From NCBI GenBank assembly GCA_964188305.1, contig OZ076901.1: a stretch of DNA of 64,000 bases, one strand, 5' to 3'. The position numbers were made by a program, and so were the translations under genes. How positions within the stretch are numbered: the stretch's first letter is position 1; every line of letters starts with the position of its first letter. This stretch comes from Podarcis bocagei (Eukaryota). Shown here piece by piece: positions 1 through 56,008 of this stretch. The notes beneath the pieces are model-generated. The model was given only the letters and a program-made list of their open reading frames with translations, was not told the DNA's origin and ran no database searches.

Positions 1-28
1 GCTGAAATGCTGGCTGGGCTCATTAGAT

Positions 29-513
29 CAGTGTTTCCCAACCACTGTTCCGCGGCACACTAGTGTGCCGCGAGATGTTGCCTGGTGTGCCGCAAGATGT
101 TGCCTGGAGGGAGGCGGGCGAGTCGGGCGGCGAGAGGCGGGGCGGCGGCGGCGAGGAGAGGCCGCCCAGCGCGGGGCTCTCGCCATCTGCCTGCCTGCCT
201 GCCTGCGAGCTCGGCGGGCAGCGCCTCCGTCCGCAGCGCCCGCCTCGCGGCTCATTCCCTGCCCCTGCCAAAGCTCACCCAGCCAAGCCGCGCTCTCCTT
301 CCTGCCTCGCTTTGCTGCCTCCTCCCCCCCCCACCCCCAAAGCTTGGAGGTTCCCCGGCAAGGGGGAGGGAAAAAAATGGAAACTTACACTTTCGTGCGT
401 CCCTCCCGGCGTGACGCTGCGCGCTGACGTCACGGGGCTGTAATGGTGGTGTGCCTCGAGATTTTTTTCATCAAACAAGTGTGCCTTTGCCCAAAAAAGG
501 TTGGGAAACACTG
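29..513. mobile_element. Non-autonomous hAT DNA transposon with GC-rich interior
   Basis: TIRs cagtgtttcccaacc / ggttgggaaacactg; perfect 8-bp TSD cattagat (21-28, 514-521). Confidence 0.9.
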
Positions 514-1502
514 CATTAGATGAATCTTGCCCATTAGTTTGTCAATTTAAAAGAGGGAGCCCACAAACCTGGGGGAAAATCACACAAATCTTGGAATAGC
601 TCGATAGTGTTAAAGATATCACTTTATTAATTAAATTGGTTTACTTTTCCAGGTACTAGCTTAAAAATCAAATTCAGATTATGTTTTGGAACAACAGCTC
701 TCAAAACAATTTACAACCTTATATCATTTTTTAATTCTATAATTTAAGACTAGATGGATATTTGCTTTTGTTTCCTTCTTATTGTAATATTAAAAATCAA
801 AGGATCTCTGTTTCTCCTACAGAATATTGTTTGTGTCGATTGGGGTGGGGAGTGAGGGATTAGAGGATGAAAGTGAGCAGATTAGCCTGTTGGCCTTGAC
901 AATTTATAGTAAATAGCGTGGGAATAGGGACCTAGGGTATGATGGGTTTGCACAAGAAAAAGAGATAAAGTTCAATCTTTTTATAAATATTGTTACTGCT
1001 AAGAAGATGACAGGTGAAACACCGTCCAAGTGTGTAGGCAATAATTGAGGAAAACAGTGGGAGTGTAGGTAGAACAGCCAATAACAGTTTATTGCTGTTG
1101 GTACTGTATTGCCTTTGACACACAGTTATAGACACAGACACTAATGAAGAGATGCCTTTGATTGCCTCCTTCACATGCAACTCCCAGCCATCTGGCTGTG
1201 ACAGCACCTGAGAGATACCTGTGTGAAAACCTGAAGAACAGCAACAGGATGTGGAGTGGCGAGGGACTATACTTCCTTGCTACTTGAGGCAAAACATTGG
1301 CAAGCCAGGTTCATTTTCTGTAAACAGCAGGACTCTGCAAAGGTATGTTTTTCTGCAGATTTGTGGATTCCGAGCTTCCTTGCAACACTAAAACCAAATG
1401 TGTCAGAATTTAGCAAGGACCTCCAAATTGGAGGAGTGGGGAGATTTTGGGCTAGAGTTAAAGACTACCCTTCTCAGAAACCTTTCTCTCCCATAGCAAT
1501 TA

Positions 1503-1671
1503 CCGTATTTTTCGCTCTATAACACGCACCCAACCATAACACGCATGTAGTTTTTAGAGGAGGAAAATCCATAGGCATGCCACCCGTAGGCATTTCCTCC
1601 ATAACACGCACAGACATTTCCCCTTACTTTTTAGGAGGAAAAAAGTGAGTGTTATGGTGCAAAAAAGATGG
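1503..1671. mobile_element. Tc1/mariner (Tc2/pogo-like) MITE
   Basis: TA-flanked ccgtattttt...aaaaagatgg; ends resemble element 47393-48085. Confidence 0.7.
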
Positions 1672-1730
1672 TAAGTGCTTGGGTGAATCTTCCTCACTAA
1701 CACTACAGGCCTTGAACAGCCCTATGTAAA

Positions 1731-1870
1731 ATCATAGAACTGTAGAGTTGGAAAGGGCGACGAGGGTCATCTAGTCCAACCCCCTGAAATGCAGGAGTCT
1801 TTCGACCCATGTGGGGCTCGAACTCATAACCCTAGTATTAAGAGTCTCATGCTCTGATGACTGAGCTATC
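1731..1870 (-). mobile_element. tRNA-Lys(CTT)-derived SINE with CR1-like tail
   Basis: Reverse strand reads tagctcagtc..agagcatgagactcttaat..ggg..ttcgagccccac, then ttggactagatgaccc..ttccaactctacagttctatgat; relatives at ~59077 and ~61308. Confidence 0.75.
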
Positions 1871-2722
1871 TCTTGCTGGAGCCCTGTTAGGAAATAAACC
1901 ACAACATTTTTTTAAGGTTCTCCACTTGTATTCTAAGTAGCAGTTACAAAGAATCTCTATAGTACCTTATTTTTGCATCACACTTTTTATTTTCTTGTAA
2001 ACCTTAATGATAGCCTAAAATGTAGATCGGTATTATTACAATATTCCTGTATTAGAGATGGGAGCAAAGGCTAAGTAAAAGTGGCTTGACTTAAATACCT
2101 AGAAGAAATTAAATTTGAGCCAGCCACTCATGCTATACCAGCTGAAAACACGCTGTACTGTATAGATCTTGTGACTTCGGTAATTGAAACATTTGGGAAG
2201 GACATGCTATGCATAAATACTGTTGTTACGCTTTTTTTTCTCCCTAGCTTTGGTAGGTGGAGGGATGTTCTCTGGAATTCTAATGATGGGTTAAGTGTGC
2301 AGGTTACAAACTCATTTGAGACTTGTGACAACTGGGTGGAGAAGTGAATCGGTTCCTTTTTTATTTTCAGGTCGCTGAAAAGGAAAGCACTGAATAATGT
2401 CTTAATGAATAGTTGAGCCTTAACCTGTTTTATATGCGGCATCTCACAGCTAATGGTTGGCAGTCACCTCTACTTATTCATCAAATAGCATGGATAGGAC
2501 AGTCTCTAGAATTTAGTCTGACCTGAAAAGAACTTTAGATACCATTTGCTGGTGCTATTTCCTTCAGGCTGAAGTCACAAAGTTAACTATTAACTATAAT
2601 GGCTAATATTACAGGTTATTGCTATACTGAAGAGTTGTTACATCCCTTAGAGATTAAAGGTGTTTGTTTTTTTTTAGAAATCAGATAAACCATATCTCAG
2701 ACATTGCCATTGTTTCCTAGCT

Positions 2723-2922
2723 NNNNNNNNNNNNNNNNNNNNNNNNNNNNNNNNNNNNNNNNNNNNNNNNNNNNNNNNNNNNNNNNNNNNNNNNNNNNNN
2801 NNNNNNNNNNNNNNNNNNNNNNNNNNNNNNNNNNNNNNNNNNNNNNNNNNNNNNNNNNNNNNNNNNNNNNNNNNNNNNNNNNNNNNNNNNNNNNNNNNNN
2901 NNNNNNNNNNNNNNNNNNNNNN
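2723..2922. other. Assembly gap (200 N)
   Basis: Run of exactly 200 N. Confidence 1.
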
Positions 2923-5478
2923 CACTGATAGGAATTTAGGGAAAATAAACTGGAGTAGGAGTTCTCCTTCTACCAGTGAGTAGACTGAACAGTAGACTGC
3001 TCAGGAGAAGTTATGTGCAGAAATGAAGTGTGTGTAAGCATCTAATCTGCCTTTTTATGGTAAGCTATAGCTATAGCTGGTCTTCAGAAATGGAATGAGC
3101 GATGTTGTGTACCCACACACCAGTGGGAGACTCAGTGGCTGCTGGAGAGTTGATCTCCCTCACTTTTAGGAAGAACAGCATCACACAGATCAGGTAGCCT
3201 GTGGCTATGAAAGCTTGAGATGATAAGACTGGCCTACTGCTGTCACCATATAAAGCTTATTGAAAGCCCACCACATAAGGTTACAACATTGCCATTTTAG
3301 TGCTTAGAAAATGTGCGATTTTCTTGATCTAATCCATGGTCTCAAAAAAGTTTCCATTCTTAATGTTACTTTTAAAAAGAAAATCCCTACCCTTTAACCT
3401 CAAGCAGATTTCCAAATACACAAGATTGTTAGATTATTGTTAGAGTATCAAAAGAAGATAAACCAACCTGCTACTTCTAGCATTTTTCCAAAACTGAAAG
3501 TAGATCATGGTTTGCCAAAATATCACCCTGGCTTTGGCCAGGTTTCAGGAACAAGACGTGTGATATAGCAGCAGACAGCTCTATTCAGCTGCTGCTTTGT
3601 GCAGGTGGGTTGTGTGAAATCATGAAAGATAAGGCAGAGTTAAAGATTATAATAGCTAGAAAATTAATGCACACACAAAAAATGAAAATTTCAGAACTAG
3701 CATAATTTTACTAAAACTACATGAAAGGACCATCAAATACTTCCCTAAGAGGCTAGTATGAAAGCTTGAAAATATTTCTCAAACAACTAATTGTAGGCTA
3801 TGTGATATCTACTGAACTTAAAGCTTTGCAAAACATGTCAATTTTTCCTTGATAAAAACAGTCTCCTATTAAATGATTGTCACACAATGGTGTGCTTTTA
3901 CCTATATGCCTGAAAAAGATCAGAGTATACAAGTGAAAAGAATGTGTTAAAATGATTGTATCCTTCAGAGTGTTATACTCCTTGGGACAGCTTTTTCCCA
4001 TTGCAGTTTCTTTTGCTATATCTTTCTCTTCAAGTTCTGGAAACAAACAAGGAAACAGGTAAGATTCTTCACTAGAAATGGTGATAATGTTAGTCATGCT
4101 CAGAGTAGACTCATTGAAATCAGTGAATTTAAGTAACAAGTTTGTTGATTTCACTCTATATACATGGGTGATATCCAACTGGATCTAATATGAGTATGAC
4201 TTTGTTGCTATCATCCACAGATAACTGTTGTTTAATTATTTGTCACATCCACAAATACTGTATCAGAAAAGATTTACTAGTTAGGAGGAGGTTCTAATGG
4301 AAATAGATGTAATAATTGGCTGCCGCTGAGGAAATCAATGATATGAATCAGAACTAAACAGCAGCAGTGGGACTGAGGTCTCTGAGGCATCTGGTCTCTG
4401 ATGTTTCTGCTAATCCATGGCAGATACCAATAATAATGTCTTATTGCTCAAATAATACAAATAAGAGTGAGCAGCCTATTAGATGTAGTCTTTTTTAAAT
4501 CATCCAGTAATAATACAACCTTCACAAGAATAATGTAAAAAATATGTAGTTTAGCTTCTGAATGGTAAAGCGCTTAAATTCTGACAATTCTTTTAAAACA
4601 TGATAACTCAAGAAGTGAAAGTGAAATCCAGTTCCTACATATTTACATTAAGCAGATGTTTAGTTTATTGTATAGTGATTAAGCTTCAAATTCCAAAAGT
4701 TACTGGTTACATCGTTCATGCTTCTGGGCGGAAATTCTTGCTGATTAATTTATGACTTGTCAGTTTACATGACCCAAATAAAACACTCTTGGGCACAAGG
4801 AAGTTTAATACAGAGAAAACTTTTGAAGGAGCAAGCATGTTTCTGTAGAAGAACAATAGCTAAAAGCAATATATTCTCTTGAAGCTGGGCCTCATGGAGG
4901 ATTTTTAATTGAAATGCAAAGGTGGAGTGAAATAGAAAAGAAATAAATCTCAACAAGGCCACTTCCAGACAAATACGTTAATTAGGTATGTTCATCCCTT
5001 GACTGGCTGAGGAAATATATCAGCAAACATCGTAAAGGCACTACTTATTTTACTTATTGCATCTAATAAGCTGTACAATCATGTCCTTCAAGATCCCATC
5101 TAATATTTAGAATAAGGACATGAAACCGAGCCATCATGGGCTACATCTTTTTGAATGTAAGCCACAAAGATGTTTTCTGGGAATAAATTTACAAAAATAA
5201 GCAGCATTTTAACAGATGTATTCAGCACTTTCCACATTTCTAAGTGAATATTTATCATGGCTGTCCCTTTGCCCCACTGAGTTTTTGTACTATTAAAGTA
5301 TTTTTACTCCTTTAGTTTAAGAAAAGTTCGGTTCCAGTCTGACATATGGTGTAAAATGAGATCAGTGTTAAGATTTGCATTGATCTCTGTAAACTTGAAA
5401 CAATAGCATTACAGAAAATCTGCAGTGTGAAACATGATTGATAACCAGCTTTGTGACTAATTTTGTTGTTGTTTCTAG

Positions 5479-5569
5479 GTCAGGGGTCACCACATTGCCA
5501 AGCTTGATCCTCTCGGCATTAGTTGTGTAAATTTTGATGAATCGGCAGTAACTGATTCTCCAAACGTCG
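5479..5569 (+). CDS. OGDH: OGDH mutually exclusive exon 4a (91 nt; lacks DADLD Ca2+ site)
   Basis: ttctag|GTC...GTC G|gtgag; VRGHHIAKLDPLGISCVNFDESAVTDSPNV, similar to the recalled mammalian alternative exon; phase 0 to 1. Confidence 0.93.
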
Positions 5570-5696
5570 GTGAGAATTACTCTGCAAATTAATTCTAATG
5601 TAATTTTAACTTTTATACCCCTTTCCTTTCCATCCCCTTCCTCCCCATCCCTCTTCTGGTATCCACTTTCCTTTTCATTCCTGGCCCATTTCATAG

Positions 5697-5799
5697 ATTC
5701 GAGGGCATCATGTAGCACAGCTCGACCCACTGGGCATCTTGGATGCTGATCTGGACTCTTCCGTTCCAGCCGATATTATCACTTCCGCAGATAAACTGG
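5697..5799 (+). CDS. OGDH: OGDH mutually exclusive exon 4b (103 nt; DADLD Ca2+ site)
   Basis: catag|ATT...CTG G|gtgag; [34 protein letters not shown]; phase 0 to 1. Confidence 0.96.
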
Positions 5800-8002
5800 G
5801 TGAGGGCTCCGAGAGCAGTTAGTGCCGCATTGCTTGAGCTCCTCCTCTCTCACTTTCACAGCTTCTAGTTAGATTGCTTCACTAAGTCTGAAGGGAAAGG
5901 TCTTAAGTTTCCTTTATAATGATCACTTTTTTAAAAATTGAACAGCAGCAAAGTAGTTCTGTCCCTTGTCACTTACCACTGTGGGCACAAGGTGTTACAT
6001 GTGCAATACAAGCCAGTTTGTTCTCTTCTACTGTTAATTTTGAGTTCAGTAGTTAATGGCTCTGAGTAGGTTAGTAGTGTCTATTATTTGCTTCTGAGGA
6101 AATGAGGAATATTTTGGAGTCACGTAAACAGGCCTTCTTCCTTGCCTTTAGCATCCCTTGACCCCCAGTGTTCAGTAGGTCTCTTGCTTGGAACTGCAGT
6201 GACTTGATTCAGCAGACTTCAAGAGTTCTGCAGTGATGCTACTGGGGAGGAACGGGATGGGTTTTCAAAAGCCTTCAGGCAAGTCTTGTGGTATTTCCTC
6301 ACTCAGTTCAGTTGTAATCCTTAGCTATGCAGCTTGCCCTAAAATCCTAAGAGTAGCTGAACCAATGACTTTCAGTGATCATGACGAGGAAGCTTTGGAG
6401 TTTATTCCCACATCTAATCAAGAGACTGAAATGGTGAGACCCTTGGTTGCAAGGTGCATGTATGTTGCTCAGATGAGGGTGTGTGTGCTGAGCCATGTTT
6501 GAAATTCGGTTTTCCAGTAAAGTCCAACCTGATCTTTTAAGTTTGATCACTAGTATTTTTTCCAAGCATAGCACAGGTTACGGTGGCTGAGCTCTATTTA
6601 TTGCTGGTGCTTTCTACAGGTTAATCAACCTGGCTCCGCAAGCGCTTTTAAGTAGCATGCTTCTAACTTAGAATAGAACAATAATAATGACCACTAACTC
6701 CTTTCAAGACTGACATGTGATTAGAGTATTTGTGCATGTAATGTTTTGAGATGGTCATGATTGATGTGCTCATAGAATGTATATTTGTGAAATGGAAGGT
6801 ATCCAAAGGAGAAAAAAATGAAAGCAAAACTGTAATGGATGTTGTTCTACTTGAATTCAGTCCACTTGGCTACACTATCATCTTCAACTTACAGTTGGCA
6901 TTCTGATGTTGTTGCCCCCTTTATGTTAAAGATCCATTACTCATACAAAGAGTGTTGGTCATGAAGTCTAGGGGTTCTTTTCAGGCCTTTGAGGGGGATA
7001 CCTAATGTGTTCTACAGTACTCCTTTGATATTACACACATTAAATCATCTTCAGCAAGTATGTCAGATACAGGACAGTGGGGTGCAGCACCCCTTTACAA
7101 TGGAGTGGTGGTGATGAATTCAGATGCAATAGACGTTTTGAGGGGGGAAATCATAAGTGGGCCCCTGCAGCATAGAGAATCTGACTCTATAACCCATTTT
7201 ACTTATGTCCCTGCTTGATAATGGCTTCATTATTACTCTTGTAGTCTGTCATTAATACTTCACAAGGGTAGAGTTACACCACCACCGGTTTTATACCTGT
7301 TAATATATGTGAATCCTATGATTTTAGTAAAGCTGTATGTAACTCTGCTACCTTGCATAGACAGTATGTGTATGAAATTCTTTAGATAATCTTTTTCTGA
7401 TCAGAGTGTGAAATCAAGGCTGTTTCACATTAAATAAAGTTAACTGGGATATTAAATATTCACTAGCAATGATTTTTTTATCTACTAATATTTAGTATCT
7501 TATCCAGTCTTATGGGGCTCTCAGACAGTAGCTAGGTTGTATTCTGAGAAATATGTGCCACCTTACATGCTAAGTTATCTGTGGCAATGGACACTGCAAA
7601 CTCAGTTTGAGAAGTAAGGTGTAGAGTGGTTCATGTTGCCTTACAACAATGGTAGCCAAAAGTGTATTCACACTGATATAGCAGCATCCGTTTCTGTCCA
7701 GTGTGGAATTACCGTAGTTGTGTATACTCTGTACTACAACAAAATGGGCATACTACAAAATGGGCAAATGTGTGCAAGCTCAGGCACTAGTTCTTAAAAG
7801 TTACAGCTCATACAACAACCAGATGGGTGGAAGCAGTTCAGGTAGCCTGATGCAATGGGTACTGTTAGGTGAAAACTGAGGAGAGCCAAATATGCCTGGT
7901 ATCTCAGCAGAGCTGATGGAAGAGCCCTGCTTACCACCTCTCTCCCTCAGGATCCTGAACAAATTCTGGAATACGTAGGAAACTACCTTGTACCAAACCA
8001 TT

Positions 8003-13047: not shown

Positions 13048-13572
13048 TACATTGCCTTGAGCTCCACAGAGGTAGATGGGATACGAGAAAGTGCTAAGAA
13101 GTTACTTCAACTGGAGCAGATATGGGATTCTGTAAGAAGGCTTTCATTTATTCATTTGTACTTTTTAAACTAGGCTCCTGCTCTAGAGACCACTTGTTCC
13201 ACGGTTTACTACTTGATGCTCTGAACTTCCCCCCCCCCTTTGCATATTTTACATAAGGAAACAATGAGGAGATCTCAAACCATGTAGCTTAACTGCTGTG
13301 TATGGGGTAACTTTCACACCTCTTTTTCTCTGTATGGTTTATATGGCTGGCTCTGAAAGATTCATTCAAGGATTTCCCCCCTGTAGTATTGCAGTCATCC
13401 TTCATTCTAACCTCCTTTCCTATGGTGGTGTTGACGGTGTGAGTACTGTTTAAAACGTTGACTTTCTCTGTATATTGCTACTTCCGCGGTTCTTTGGGGT
13501 TTTAAAAAACTAACTTTGACTGGGTCTCTCTGTCTTCTCCTTTCTGCATCCCACCTTACCCCCTTCTCCCAG

Positions 13573-13617
13573 ATCTTGCAGTATTCAAGGAGCGGCTGAG
13601 AGTGCTAACAGTAGGAG
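13573..13617 (+). CDS. OGDH: OGDH optional 45-nt insert exon
   Basis: cccag|AT CTT GCA...GGA G|gtatg; phase 1-1; (D)LAVFKERLRVLTVG, matching the recalled 15-aa mammalian insert. Confidence 0.9.
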
Positions 13618-15390: not shown

Positions 15391-18001
15391 AATAAGGTAG
15401 GGGAATTACCCAAATCTTTCTCCTGAGGACAGAACTACACCTGATTCAGGTTGCCATCAATATGAAAGCAAAATTTCAAGTACTCCCTGACCTCTGTATC
15501 GTGTTTCAGCTGGAGTTGGGGGGGGGGGCGATCTCTTGACAGTGAACCTAATTAGGCCCACCATGCCTTCCCATTTGGTCCGCCAGGCATAATGAAGATA
15601 ACAGGCATTCCATTGGCATCATACCTCACATCATAAATGGTGTCTAGTACGGGGCAAGTAAAGCTGGATCAAAAAAAGGGGTGGAGCACCCAGCTGATCA
15701 GCACTGGGTGCAGTTATTTGCAAGGCACTTTGAAGCCCTGGCTGTCAGCTGATCACTGGAGCCCTAAAGTACAGTGCAGAACTCCCTTTCCAAGCAACAA
15801 CAATCAGCTGGTGGTACCTGCACAGCCAAAGTCCCAACAGTTCACTGGGATTGGCCCAGGGAGCTGGAGGAAGTAGCTTGGATTCAAAGCACTTCCTTCA
15901 CTGCTTTCTCAGAAGAGATGAAAAAATGCTCAATTTAAAAACTTGGTGTGTTTTTTTGTTTTTCTTTTCCCAGGGGAGCAATTTATATTCAAAGCACTGG
16001 AGGAAGTGCTTTGAATATAAACAGCTTTCTCTCCAAAGGAGGAAATGTTCCAATTATAGGAGCATTTTGCCCTCTGCAGATACTTCAAAGGGGTTCCCTG
16101 TAACCAACAATCAGTCAATTATCTGTTACCGTGACCTTCAGGCTTTGACAAGTGTCCGTCACCTCGTGCCATTATGAAGTCAGGTGGACCACCCACCTGT
16201 CCAAGTTTATTTGCAAGAGATGAGGAAGATAAGGAATTGCCAGAAGCAATTCCCGACCCCACCCCTAGTTTAGTCAGACTTGCCCCATTTTGTTTCCTTG
16301 CCCCCCTGGTGGGAGAGCAGCATGGGATACAGAGGACTAAACATGGCAGCAAGGAGTGAGAATTTGGCATATCATTTAAAGGTTCAGTAGCAACCCTTTA
16401 TCAAGCAGCATTGTAGCTCTGCCTGCTTCCAAGTCTATGTAATCTTCTACTGACAGATGAAGCAGAAGTGTCTGGTGGGAATTGATTGCTTTGCAATCGG
16501 CCTGATGCAGGAAGAAAAACGATGTAACGTGTACAGTCCTTTCTTTGAGCCCTTTAGGCCAGCTGCAGAAGCCCTTTCTTGTGTCTTGCCGCCGTCTGAA
16601 ATCTTGCTGGTGGTAGCAGGGAAAGGGCCTTGGTTACGTGGATCTCCCTGCTCCAAGAAAACCATCCATGCCTATTGCCAGTGGCCTTATGCCATCGTCT
16701 TGCAGCATTTTAGACAGGACATTAGTCTGTCCTTTGTTTGGCTTTTGTCTCCCCTTGGCTTCATGATGATTTTGCTGGCCTGTGAGCTTCTATTGTCTTA
16801 GGTTTAAGATGGTTCCTCTCTTTCAGTTTGTGTTTAACTGTTTTGGGTTAGTTGCATGTAGTGCTTACTTTAAGGTCAAAGGCGGAATAGACATTTCAAA
16901 ACACATAAAGGGCTGGATTCAGCTAATGAGTCCCATCAGTGGAAGCCCTGTGCTTGCTCTACGGGGCTTTACCCCTGTCCTCCCCTCGTTTCCCCTGGAA
17001 AGGGCTGGGGGGGGAGTATTAGGAGAACCCCCTGGAACAGCGTGCCTGGGGAGGAGATGCAGAATTGTTCTGTCTGGCAAGCTGAATTGCTTTCTGTTAC
17101 AAAACTCCTCCCAGAATAGTTTCTCATAGATACCAAGTAGATACCAAGGAGTTTTTCTTTAATGTTGAAAATGCTTGTCAAGTTGCTGTGCAAAATCTCC
17201 ACTTGGATTAGTTGGTGTATCTTTTTATAGACAACTTTCTGGCTCTCAGTTGTATGATCTTCAGATGAACACTCCTTAATTATTCCAGCAACTGATGCTG
17301 AAGTATTTTAATATTGGTAATAATAAGATACTTCTGGTCTGTGCTCCTGCACAGTAAACGTGAATAGTGGATGCTTAAATGTATTGCTGAGAGAGAATTT
17401 TGAGATTTTGTGAAAGCAAAACCTTTGTGAGGCCTGTGAAGAGCATTGTTTGCAGAGTCCAGTTAATTCTCAAATCTTTGTTCCATGGAGTGAGCTATTC
17501 AGGAGAGTCCTACACAGAACCCTAAAACTGATACATAATCATGCTGCTTTTCTACTTTTTGGTTCTGGGAGCTGGGCCTTTAACTCTTTTATTTCCTGCT
17601 TCATTTTACTTTTAATTTTAAATATGTGGTGAAATGTGGTGACAATGTATTTTTGCAATACTTTTTTTGTCTTTAACATCCAAAAAAATGTGTGAATGTG
17701 GGTCTAAAATTCTTATTGATTCCTCCCCTGGATTTAATTACCAATTTTAACGGCAAGTATATTACCTGTGTTTACACCCTCCGTGCCTTTTACGGTAACC
17801 TTTTTTGTTCTTGCTTACCTGTTCATCATTTTAATTGCTGCCTTTTTTTTCCTTCATACAAACCTCCTTCATGCTTATTTTGTGCTGCTTTCTTGTCCCT
17901 CCTCTCCTTCACCAAAACCTGGTTCCTGTGCTGCGGCTGTCTGCATTGAACGCCTCTTCCCACTCCTTTTTTGCCTTCTCCTACCCATGAAAATTCTGCA
18001 G

Positions 18002-18117
18002 GGTTTTATGGCCTGGACGAATCGGACCTCGACAAGGTTTTTCACTTGCCCACTACCACTTTCATTGGAGGAAAAGAATCTGCTCTCCCTCTTCGGGAAA
18101 TCATCCGCCGTTTAGAG
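18002..18117 (+). CDS. OGDH: OGDH exon (116 nt)
   Basis: ctgcag|..|gtaag; [39 protein letters not shown]. Confidence 0.97.
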
Positions 18118-51904: not shown

Positions 51905-52718
51905 TGTTTTTTAAATATTTTTTTAATTAGGAATTTGAACAAAATATATTATCTTAAAACGTATCATCCTTAATTTCCCCCCCCCCTATAAAACAACCCA
52001 CCCTCCCCTCCCCCCCAACTTCCCTCAGATCCAATCTCTGGTTTCTCTACAAATGCTATTCTCTGCATGTTACAAAATTGTATAAATCCTTAATTTATCT
52101 GACTGGTTATTGTCAATAAAAAGTTTGTAAGTGTTTTTCAAAGCCTGCCAAGGAGTCCAGTTCACTTTGTTGCTTCTTTAAGTACTTTGTAAAAGGTTCC
52201 CATTCATCTTTAAAGTCACAGTTATCCTTGTCCTGTAGTTTATGTGTCAATTTTGCCAATTCTGCGTAGTCCATCAGTTTCTCTTGCCATAGTTCTTTAG
52301 TCGGGGTTTCCTCATTCTTCCATCCTTGTGATATTAAGACTTGCTGCCATTGTCACATACATGAAGATATTTTTCTGCTTCCTTGGCAGGTCTTTTCCTA
52401 TAATCCCTAACAGAAATGCTTCAGGTTTCTTAACAAATGTTAGATGTAACATTTTCTTCAATTCATTGTATATCATTTCCCAAAACTTTTTAATTTCCTT
52501 ACAATCCCACCACATATGGTAAAATGTCCCCTCCTTTTCCTTACATTTCCAACACATATTTGAGCTGGCTTTATACATTATTCCTAACTGCACTGGTGTC
52601 TTATACCATCTATACGTCATCTTCATATAATTTTCTTTCAACAAAGAACCATCTGTAAATTTTAAATCAATTTTCCATAACCTTTCCCAATCTTCCATCA
52701 TAATGTTATGACCTATAT
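51905..52718 (-). mobile_element. L1-clade LINE 3' fragment (ORF2 C-terminus)
   Basis: CWKCKEKEGTFYHMWWDC zinc-finger-like motif; related to copy at 62365. Confidence 0.88.
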
Positions 52719-55406: not shown

Positions 55407-56008
55407 AGCAGTTCATCCCGTCTGCAGGAGGGGAAACGGGAGGCACAAAAGCATGATCTCACAACAGATCGACCTCTTCGCCAGCCAGTTCCGTCTTCTC
55501 TGACTTAGTAACAGTGCCAGCCATGCTTCCCCCCCCCCAGTGTGTGGGGCAGGGAGGGGAATCCCAATTTAGTTTTGATTACGCACCAGTAGCCAATTGC
55601 ATACCTCCTGACTAAATTCAAGATGTGGTACATATCTTCAGAATGTATATAACGTCTAGGTGCATCTTTTATGGGTAATATCTGCTATATATATTATGGG
55701 AAATGGCTTGTCTGTTTGTTTGTTTGCTTGTTTGTTCTCTGTGCTTTCGGACACCTCTTGCCAAAGTTGGCTTGAGGGCTCCCAAGATGGGGGTGGTGTT
55801 TACTGTTGACCTTGAGCTACTGGCCGCCATTTTGAATTAAGGTAGCGGACTGAAACGCGACTTTGGCAGGACTTTACCTACCGGTAATTTTTGGCATGAC
55901 AGGTGCAAACTGACAAATTACATCCTCTGTTTAAAAATCACAGATTAGTTTTGGTTTCTAAAAATTTCCAGTCAGAGCCAGGAAACACCCCCCCCCCATA
56001 GTTACATA

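Follow-up and report, generated by a model that had tools for sequence, protein, structure and literature searches.

A putative distal branch-point cluster between OGDH exons 4a and 4b in the lizard Podarcis bocagei, orthologous to a published arrangement

The analysed stretch of 64,000 nucleotides of Podarcis bocagei contig OZ076901.1 (the window) carries the tandem exons 4a and 4b of OGDH, separated by a short intron whose putative branch-point cluster is orthologous to the one described for this gene by Kralovicova et al. (Nucleic Acids Res 2021; PMC7969005) and which is strongly conserved among sauropsids. We consider it highly likely, from the sequence comparisons below, that the pair forms a Ca2+ switch in this lizard, and that its exclusivity arises from branch points placed too near the exon 4a donor. 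In the predicted scheme the two exons would be an ancient tandem duplicate, giving an enzyme that is either Ca2+-insensitive (4a) or Ca2+-activated (4b, through its DADLD motif). The 4b acceptor would be served by branch adenines 23–40 nt past the 4a donor, followed by an AG-free pyrimidine tract of 84 nt. U1 at the 4a donor and U2 at the branch sites would be unable to coexist within ∼50 nt, so that the 127-nt intron could not be removed and 4a could not be joined to 4b. Exon 4b would then be reached from exon 3, and exon 4a joined onward to exon 5 or exon 6; any product containing both would be out of frame anyway. Ca2+ activation requires DADLD (Armstrong 2014 and Denton 2016, both cited in PMC7969005), and the choice of exon would decide the mitochondrial Ca2+ response of the rate-limiting E1 of the Krebs cycle and hence tissue-specific energy supply.

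Anatomy of the exon 4a/4b pair

An initial annotation of this DNA had described two paralogous phase 0-to-1 exons 127 nt apart, and our reading of the sequence confirmed their coordinates, phases and peptides (Table 1). Exon 4a lies between an AG at 5477-5478 and a GTGAGA at 5570, and exon 4b between an AG at 5695-5696 and a GTGAGG at 5800. Both donors are U2-type, which rules out U2/U12 incompatibility as the cause of exclusivity. Exon 4a translates as VRGHHIAKLDPLGISCVNFDESAVTDSPNV with one leftover base and exon 4b as 34 residues, also with one leftover base; 11 of the first 14 residues are identical between the two peptides, which are tandem paralogues in the same phase. The 4b peptide has 100% identity with its Lerista counterpart. 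DADLD is encoded by 4b and not by 4a, as had been noted at the outset, and the exon lengths bear out the further statement that double inclusion (91 + 103 = 194 nt, no multiple of 3) shifts the reading frame.

The 3' splice region of exon 4a is conventional, with branch-like UGAC (A 5456) and CUAAU (A 5460) motifs 23 and 19 nt upstream of the exon, and then a U-rich tract and AG. Mapping in human placed the branch that serves 4a 27-28 nt upstream of its exon (PMC7969005).

A separate observation concerns position 91 of exon 4b (window 5787), which is G in a GCA codon for Ala. Alanine also occupies this codon in Phrynocephalus, Lerista, snakes and crocodile, where G was judged from the encoded residue. 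Only the A allele of endotherms and the T allele of fish, amphibians and turtles were tested for their effect on 4b inclusion (PMC7969005).

Table 1. OGDH features in the window, and length of intron 4a at the other loci compared
Feature	Coordinates	Length	Strand	Remarks
Exon 3, probable, unreadable	2714-2922		+	acceptor-like tttcctag (2713-2720) next to 200-base N run
3' splice region of exon 4a, conventional	5450-5478		+	sequence read directly
Exon 4a, Ca2+-insensitive version, no DADLD	5479-5569	91 nt	+	phase 0 to 1; sequence read and script check
Intron 4a, U2-type GT-AG	5570-5696	127 nt	+	AG-free from 5575 to 5694
Distal branch-point cluster, putative	5590-5611		+	four UAA motifs; positional conservation with mapped chicken/human branch points
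Long polypyrimidine tract ('megaPPT')	5610-5693	84 nt	+	85% pyrimidine; C 36, T 35
Exon 4b, Ca2+-sensitive version	5697-5799	103 nt	+	phase 0 to 1; DADLD codons 5742-5756
Conserved intronic block directly 3' of exon 4b	5800-5949		+	75-88% identity vs six sauropsids
Alternative exon 5, DLAVFKERLRVLTVG	13573-13617	45 nt	+	neuron-enriched partner of 4a in other vertebrates
Exon 6, common downstream exon	18002-18117		+	includes second Ca2+ site ESDLD; reads as in OGDH
Intron 4a, Phrynocephalus		120 nt		
Intron 4a, Lerista		120 nt		
Intron 4a, Gekko		131 nt		
Intron 4a, Liasis		132 nt		
Intron 4a, Ardeotis (bird)		129 nt		
Intron 4a, Crocodylus		158 nt		

A putative branch-point cluster close to the exon 4a donor

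Apart from its acceptor, intron 4a contains a single AG, that within the donor GTGAGA itself at 5573. The initial annotation had given the AG-free zone as ∼5576-5694, which holds and slightly understates the case, the whole intron between donor and acceptor being free of AG. Among the 4467 AG-to-AG gaps of the window, the resulting one of 122 nt ranks fifth in length; the four that exceed it are a run of N and three gaps immediately upstream of exons 5 and 6 of OGDH.

Four branch-like UAA motifs follow the 4a donor, with adenines at 5592 (+23), 5598 (+29), 5603 (+34) and 5609 (+40), all within 50 nt of it. Two of these, TTCTAAT (A 5598) and TTTTAAC (A 5609), had been recognized from the start; both are real, but they are not the only ones, since further UAA motifs stand at +23 and +34. 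Four UAA motifs in a stretch that is 85% A+T are not far above chance by composition alone, and the argument for these candidate branch points is one of conserved position rather than of composition. The ∼85 nt of mostly pyrimidines said to follow the motifs measured 84 nt. C and U are about equally frequent in this C-rich tract, in agreement with the published account in which U enrichment of the megaPPT came later, in mammals (PMC7969005).

An alternative basis for exclusivity would be competing RNA secondary structures instead of distance, on the docking/selector model known from insect Dscam, and we considered the fold of this region. In a predicted 8-bp stem, the 4a donor region is base-paired to +31 to +38, with +23 and +29 in the loop, and comparable hairpins around the branch cluster have been reported in human and chicken (PMC7969005). 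The lizard fold is nevertheless weak (−5.7 kcal/mol, z −0.39), 69 of 200 shuffled sequences fold at least as well, and the alignment fold contains no compensatory change; in the published work, moreover, the hairpin tunes branch choice rather than exclusivity (PMC7969005). Structure in place of distance is thus a very improbable basis for exclusivity here. By the same measures, a fold no better than shuffles and lacking covariation, we set the hairpin aside as support for the branch cluster.

Conservation across sauropsids

We compared the window with six OGDH loci, from Phrynocephalus, Lerista, Gekko, Liasis, Ardeotis and Crocodylus. The lizard intron falls inside the published range of 118-131 nt, and the Crocodylus intron, the longest of the set (Table 1), agrees with the remark that the alligator intron stayed longer (PMC7969005). 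At all six loci, as in the window, the sequence from cluster to acceptor is AG-free, the sole extra intronic AGs being one in the python at +18 and one in the bird at +33, upstream of or inside the cluster. In the window, agamid, gecko and python, UAA stands at +23, +29, +34 and +40/41, and URA motifs occupy matching positions in the six loci; in Lerista, +29 reads UGA and the fourth site is gone. All seven sauropsids share A23 and A29 without change, as well as the donor GTGAGAATT and the final 10 bases of the intron. Overall, the window intron is 84-87% identical to those of the four other squamates, which represent four families, 79% to that of the bird and 67% to that of the crocodile. A neutral flank, taken 151-300 nt upstream of 4a, gave 44-54% identity, with a shuffle baseline of 51%. 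Conservation extends into the intronic block directly 3' of exon 4b and drops to the ∼50% baseline past 150 nt; the block is likely to be a conserved splicing control element.

The same comparison bears on whether the reading frame, rather than branch-point position, mainly enforces exclusivity. A yUnAy-like UUCAU, with its A at 5677 (+108), lies 19 nt before the 4b acceptor. Were this proximal branch used, 4a would be joined to 4b, nonsense-mediated decay (NMD) would remove the product and the distal UAA motifs would be bystanders. The combined exon length of 194 nt suits such a scheme, as does the occurrence of the motif in both the window and Liasis, and NMD may have helped to clear out-of-frame transcripts early after the exon duplication; fish and frog reporters yield 4a+4b+ products (PMC7969005). 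However, the A at +108 is G in Phrynocephalus, and Lerista, Ardeotis and Crocodylus have a poorer CCAU; on this alignment UUCAU is not a conserved element, whereas A23, A29 and the tract free of AG are conserved. In human and chicken, lariat mapping detected distal branches only, and NMD-immune minigenes from amniotes gave no out-of-frame product (PMC7969005). A proximal branch would also leave unexplained why the intron has kept a length of 120-132 nt and its AG-free state across five squamate families. We regard enforcement mainly by the frame as unlikely.

Exon 4a could alternatively be a conserved relic, unused in this lizard, which would then make 4b constitutively and possess no switch. 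The low level of 4a-only isoforms in most tissues (PMC7969005) is in keeping with such disuse. Against it, exon 4a is open, with its AG acceptor and GTGAGAAT donor intact, both here and at six of six other sauropsid loci, and its first 20 residues are nearly invariant across the loci compared. Annotated gene models contain 4a in Lerista, Gekko, Sphenodon and Lepidochelys, as well as 4a+5 in birds, and exon 5, the usual partner of 4a, is intact in the window too. We find disuse of exon 4a hard to credit.

Relation to the published OGDH mechanism

Using lariat mapping and mutagenesis, Kralovicova et al. (PMC7969005) established that distal branch points keep OGDH exons 4a and 4b exclusive, the experimental evidence for this intron coming from human, chicken, frog and sunfish. 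The human branch adenines were mapped to +25, +31, +36 and +41, all below a steric threshold of ∼50 nt, and those of chicken to +23, +29, +34 and +39, of which +39 is dominant; the two sets are shifted by two because Eutheria gained a 2-nt insertion (PMC7969005). In human constructs, double and triple branch mutations reduced 4b inclusion, and the triple mutant also produced small amounts of 4a+4b+ and 4a-4b- products (PMC7969005).

The lizard arrangement is the same as the published one in gene, in exon lengths of 91 and 103 nt, in the restriction of DADLD to 4b, in the donor GTGAGAAT, in the AG-free pyrimidine tract, in the 118-131 nt size class and in the conserved ...CCTGGCCCATTTCATAG acceptor. 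Its first three putative branch adenines match those of chicken, whereas the last lies at +40 rather than +39, and UAA, the optimal motif, is present at all four sites in the window, while the +29 site reads GAA in chicken, turtles and alligator. Nothing of substance differs between the two arrangements, and function is assigned to the window by orthology.

Reptiles are represented in the published work by its Supplementary Figure S1, which aligns OGDH intron 4a from anole, Burmese python, tuatara, three turtles and alligator (PMC7969005). The anole row equals the window's gtgagaattactctgcaaattaattctaatgtaattttaacttttatacccc, allowing for machine-reading noise, and the same motifs are visible in the anole, python and tuatara rows. 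The reporters of that study came from human, opossum, chicken, frog, cod and zebrafish, and its endogenous RNA from human, rat, quail, frog, opossum, echidna and platypus, with no reptile in either set; a python minigene appears in the primer table, yet no python result is given among the figure legends (PMC7969005). The steric switch was offered in the initial annotation as a new inference from tropomyosin and actinin. The reading itself is supported by orthology and by a motif-for-motif match to the sauropsid cluster, but its novelty does not stand, since the mechanism has been known for OGDH itself since 2021, with reptiles in the alignment (PMC7969005); the observation made in the window is correct but ordinary.

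The authors held that the size restriction of intron 4a, seen in birds and mammals as the amniote range, had its origin among reptiles, and tied its tightening to the road towards endothermy (PMC7969005). A squamate with four optimal branch motifs and an intron of 127 nt would fit this account as one more data point, raising no new question.

Two other exon pairs offer parallels, and both are cited in the same study, TPM1 exons 2/3 (Smith and Nadal-Ginard 1989) as the steric precedent and the NM/SM exons of ACTN1 alongside it (PMC7969005). In TPM1, as predicted here, the downstream exon has its branch far from the acceptor and too near the upstream donor, followed by a long pyrimidine tract; the gene and exon pair are unrelated, and TPM1 has one dominant branch in place of a cluster. 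ACTN1, likewise an unrelated gene, has, like the scheme predicted here, a distal branch point, a long pyrimidine tract, mutual exclusivity and a Ca2+-related choice. Exclusivity of the NM and SM exons also depends on repressor proteins.

Protein models and possible leakage

Retrieved sauropsid protein models carry 4a, 4a+5, 4b or 4b+5, and 4a together with 4b was absent from all retrieved amniote protein models. Both exons occurred together in four models, all from fish. Human-looking protein matches (P0009, P0011 and P0229) were left out of these comparisons. None of the matching sequencing runs listed is recorded as RNA. Contig runs marked 'RNA?' were rejected as proof of 4a expression, as they contain 36-77% of a mostly intronic stretch of 701 nt and may be DNA.

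One of the fish models, P0005 from Aldrovandia affinis, is annotated with 30 residues of 4a and 34 of 4b in a single frame, and appears to be an artefact of annotation, not a genuine isoform. A truncated 4a is joined to 4b in frame in annotated isoforms of two fish, Poeciliopsis and Syngnathus, and in a short contig product (P0161, P0198, P0002). The lizard exon also contains an in-frame GTAACT donor at 5548-5553, 22 nt inside the end of exon 4a, use of which would leave a 69-nt 4a' of exactly this truncated kind. Its distance to the branch cluster is 45-62 nt, and it is weak, having no G at -1 or at +5.

Leakage of the block in this lizard, or its bypass under regulation, through either the lineage-specific proximal UUCAU (A 5677) or the donor at 5548, appears improbable. 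If the donor were used, it would yield a tandem protein of a 23-residue 4a' and 4b resembling the models in a few fish. The proximal motif, if used, would permit 4a-4b joining, and is one feature that could make the species leaky. By either route the switch of an ectothermic amniote would gain an isoform that is unproductive or a third one.

The wider OGDH locus

To identify the gene we searched with the 4b peptide by phmmer, which led to the full-length fish OGDH P0005, and aligned the latter to the window by tblastn. This recovered exons 4a and 4b together with 21 further exons between 18002 and 39779, the 21 being ∼86-93% identical to sauropsid OGDH. The closest retrieved proteins are squamate OGDHs (Phrynocephalus, Lerista, Liasis, Naja and Gekko), at a rough tblastn identity of ∼90-93%. 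We assign the gene to OGDH, and not to OGDHL or another E1, because of these exon matches, the OGDH-like reading of exon 6 and the presence of the alternative exon 5. The second Ca2+ site in exon 6 is one described for OGDH (PMC7969005), and the exon 5 peptide DLAVFKERLRVLTVG is found in annotated bird, python, cobra and crocodile isoforms as well.

Residues 1-136 of full-length OGDH had no tblastn match anywhere in window 1-5478. The acceptor-like tttcctag is followed after two bases by an N run of exactly 200 bases (2723-2922), under which OGDH exon 3 is probably hidden.

Further AG-poor stretches were observed along the locus. Upstream of exon 5 lies a 129-nt stretch free of AG (13443-13570), which forms a second extended AG-exclusion zone of the alternative region; the A of a strong CUAAC branch motif is at 13513, 59 nt upstream of the acceptor. 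Before exon 6, a pair of AG-free gaps, 186 and 244 nt long and divided by a single AG at 17756 (17571-18001), reaches the acceptor at 18000-18001; these are the longest natural AG gaps in the window. Downstream of OGDH, AG-free gaps of 121 nt (52442-52563) and 107 nt (55658-55765) were also present.
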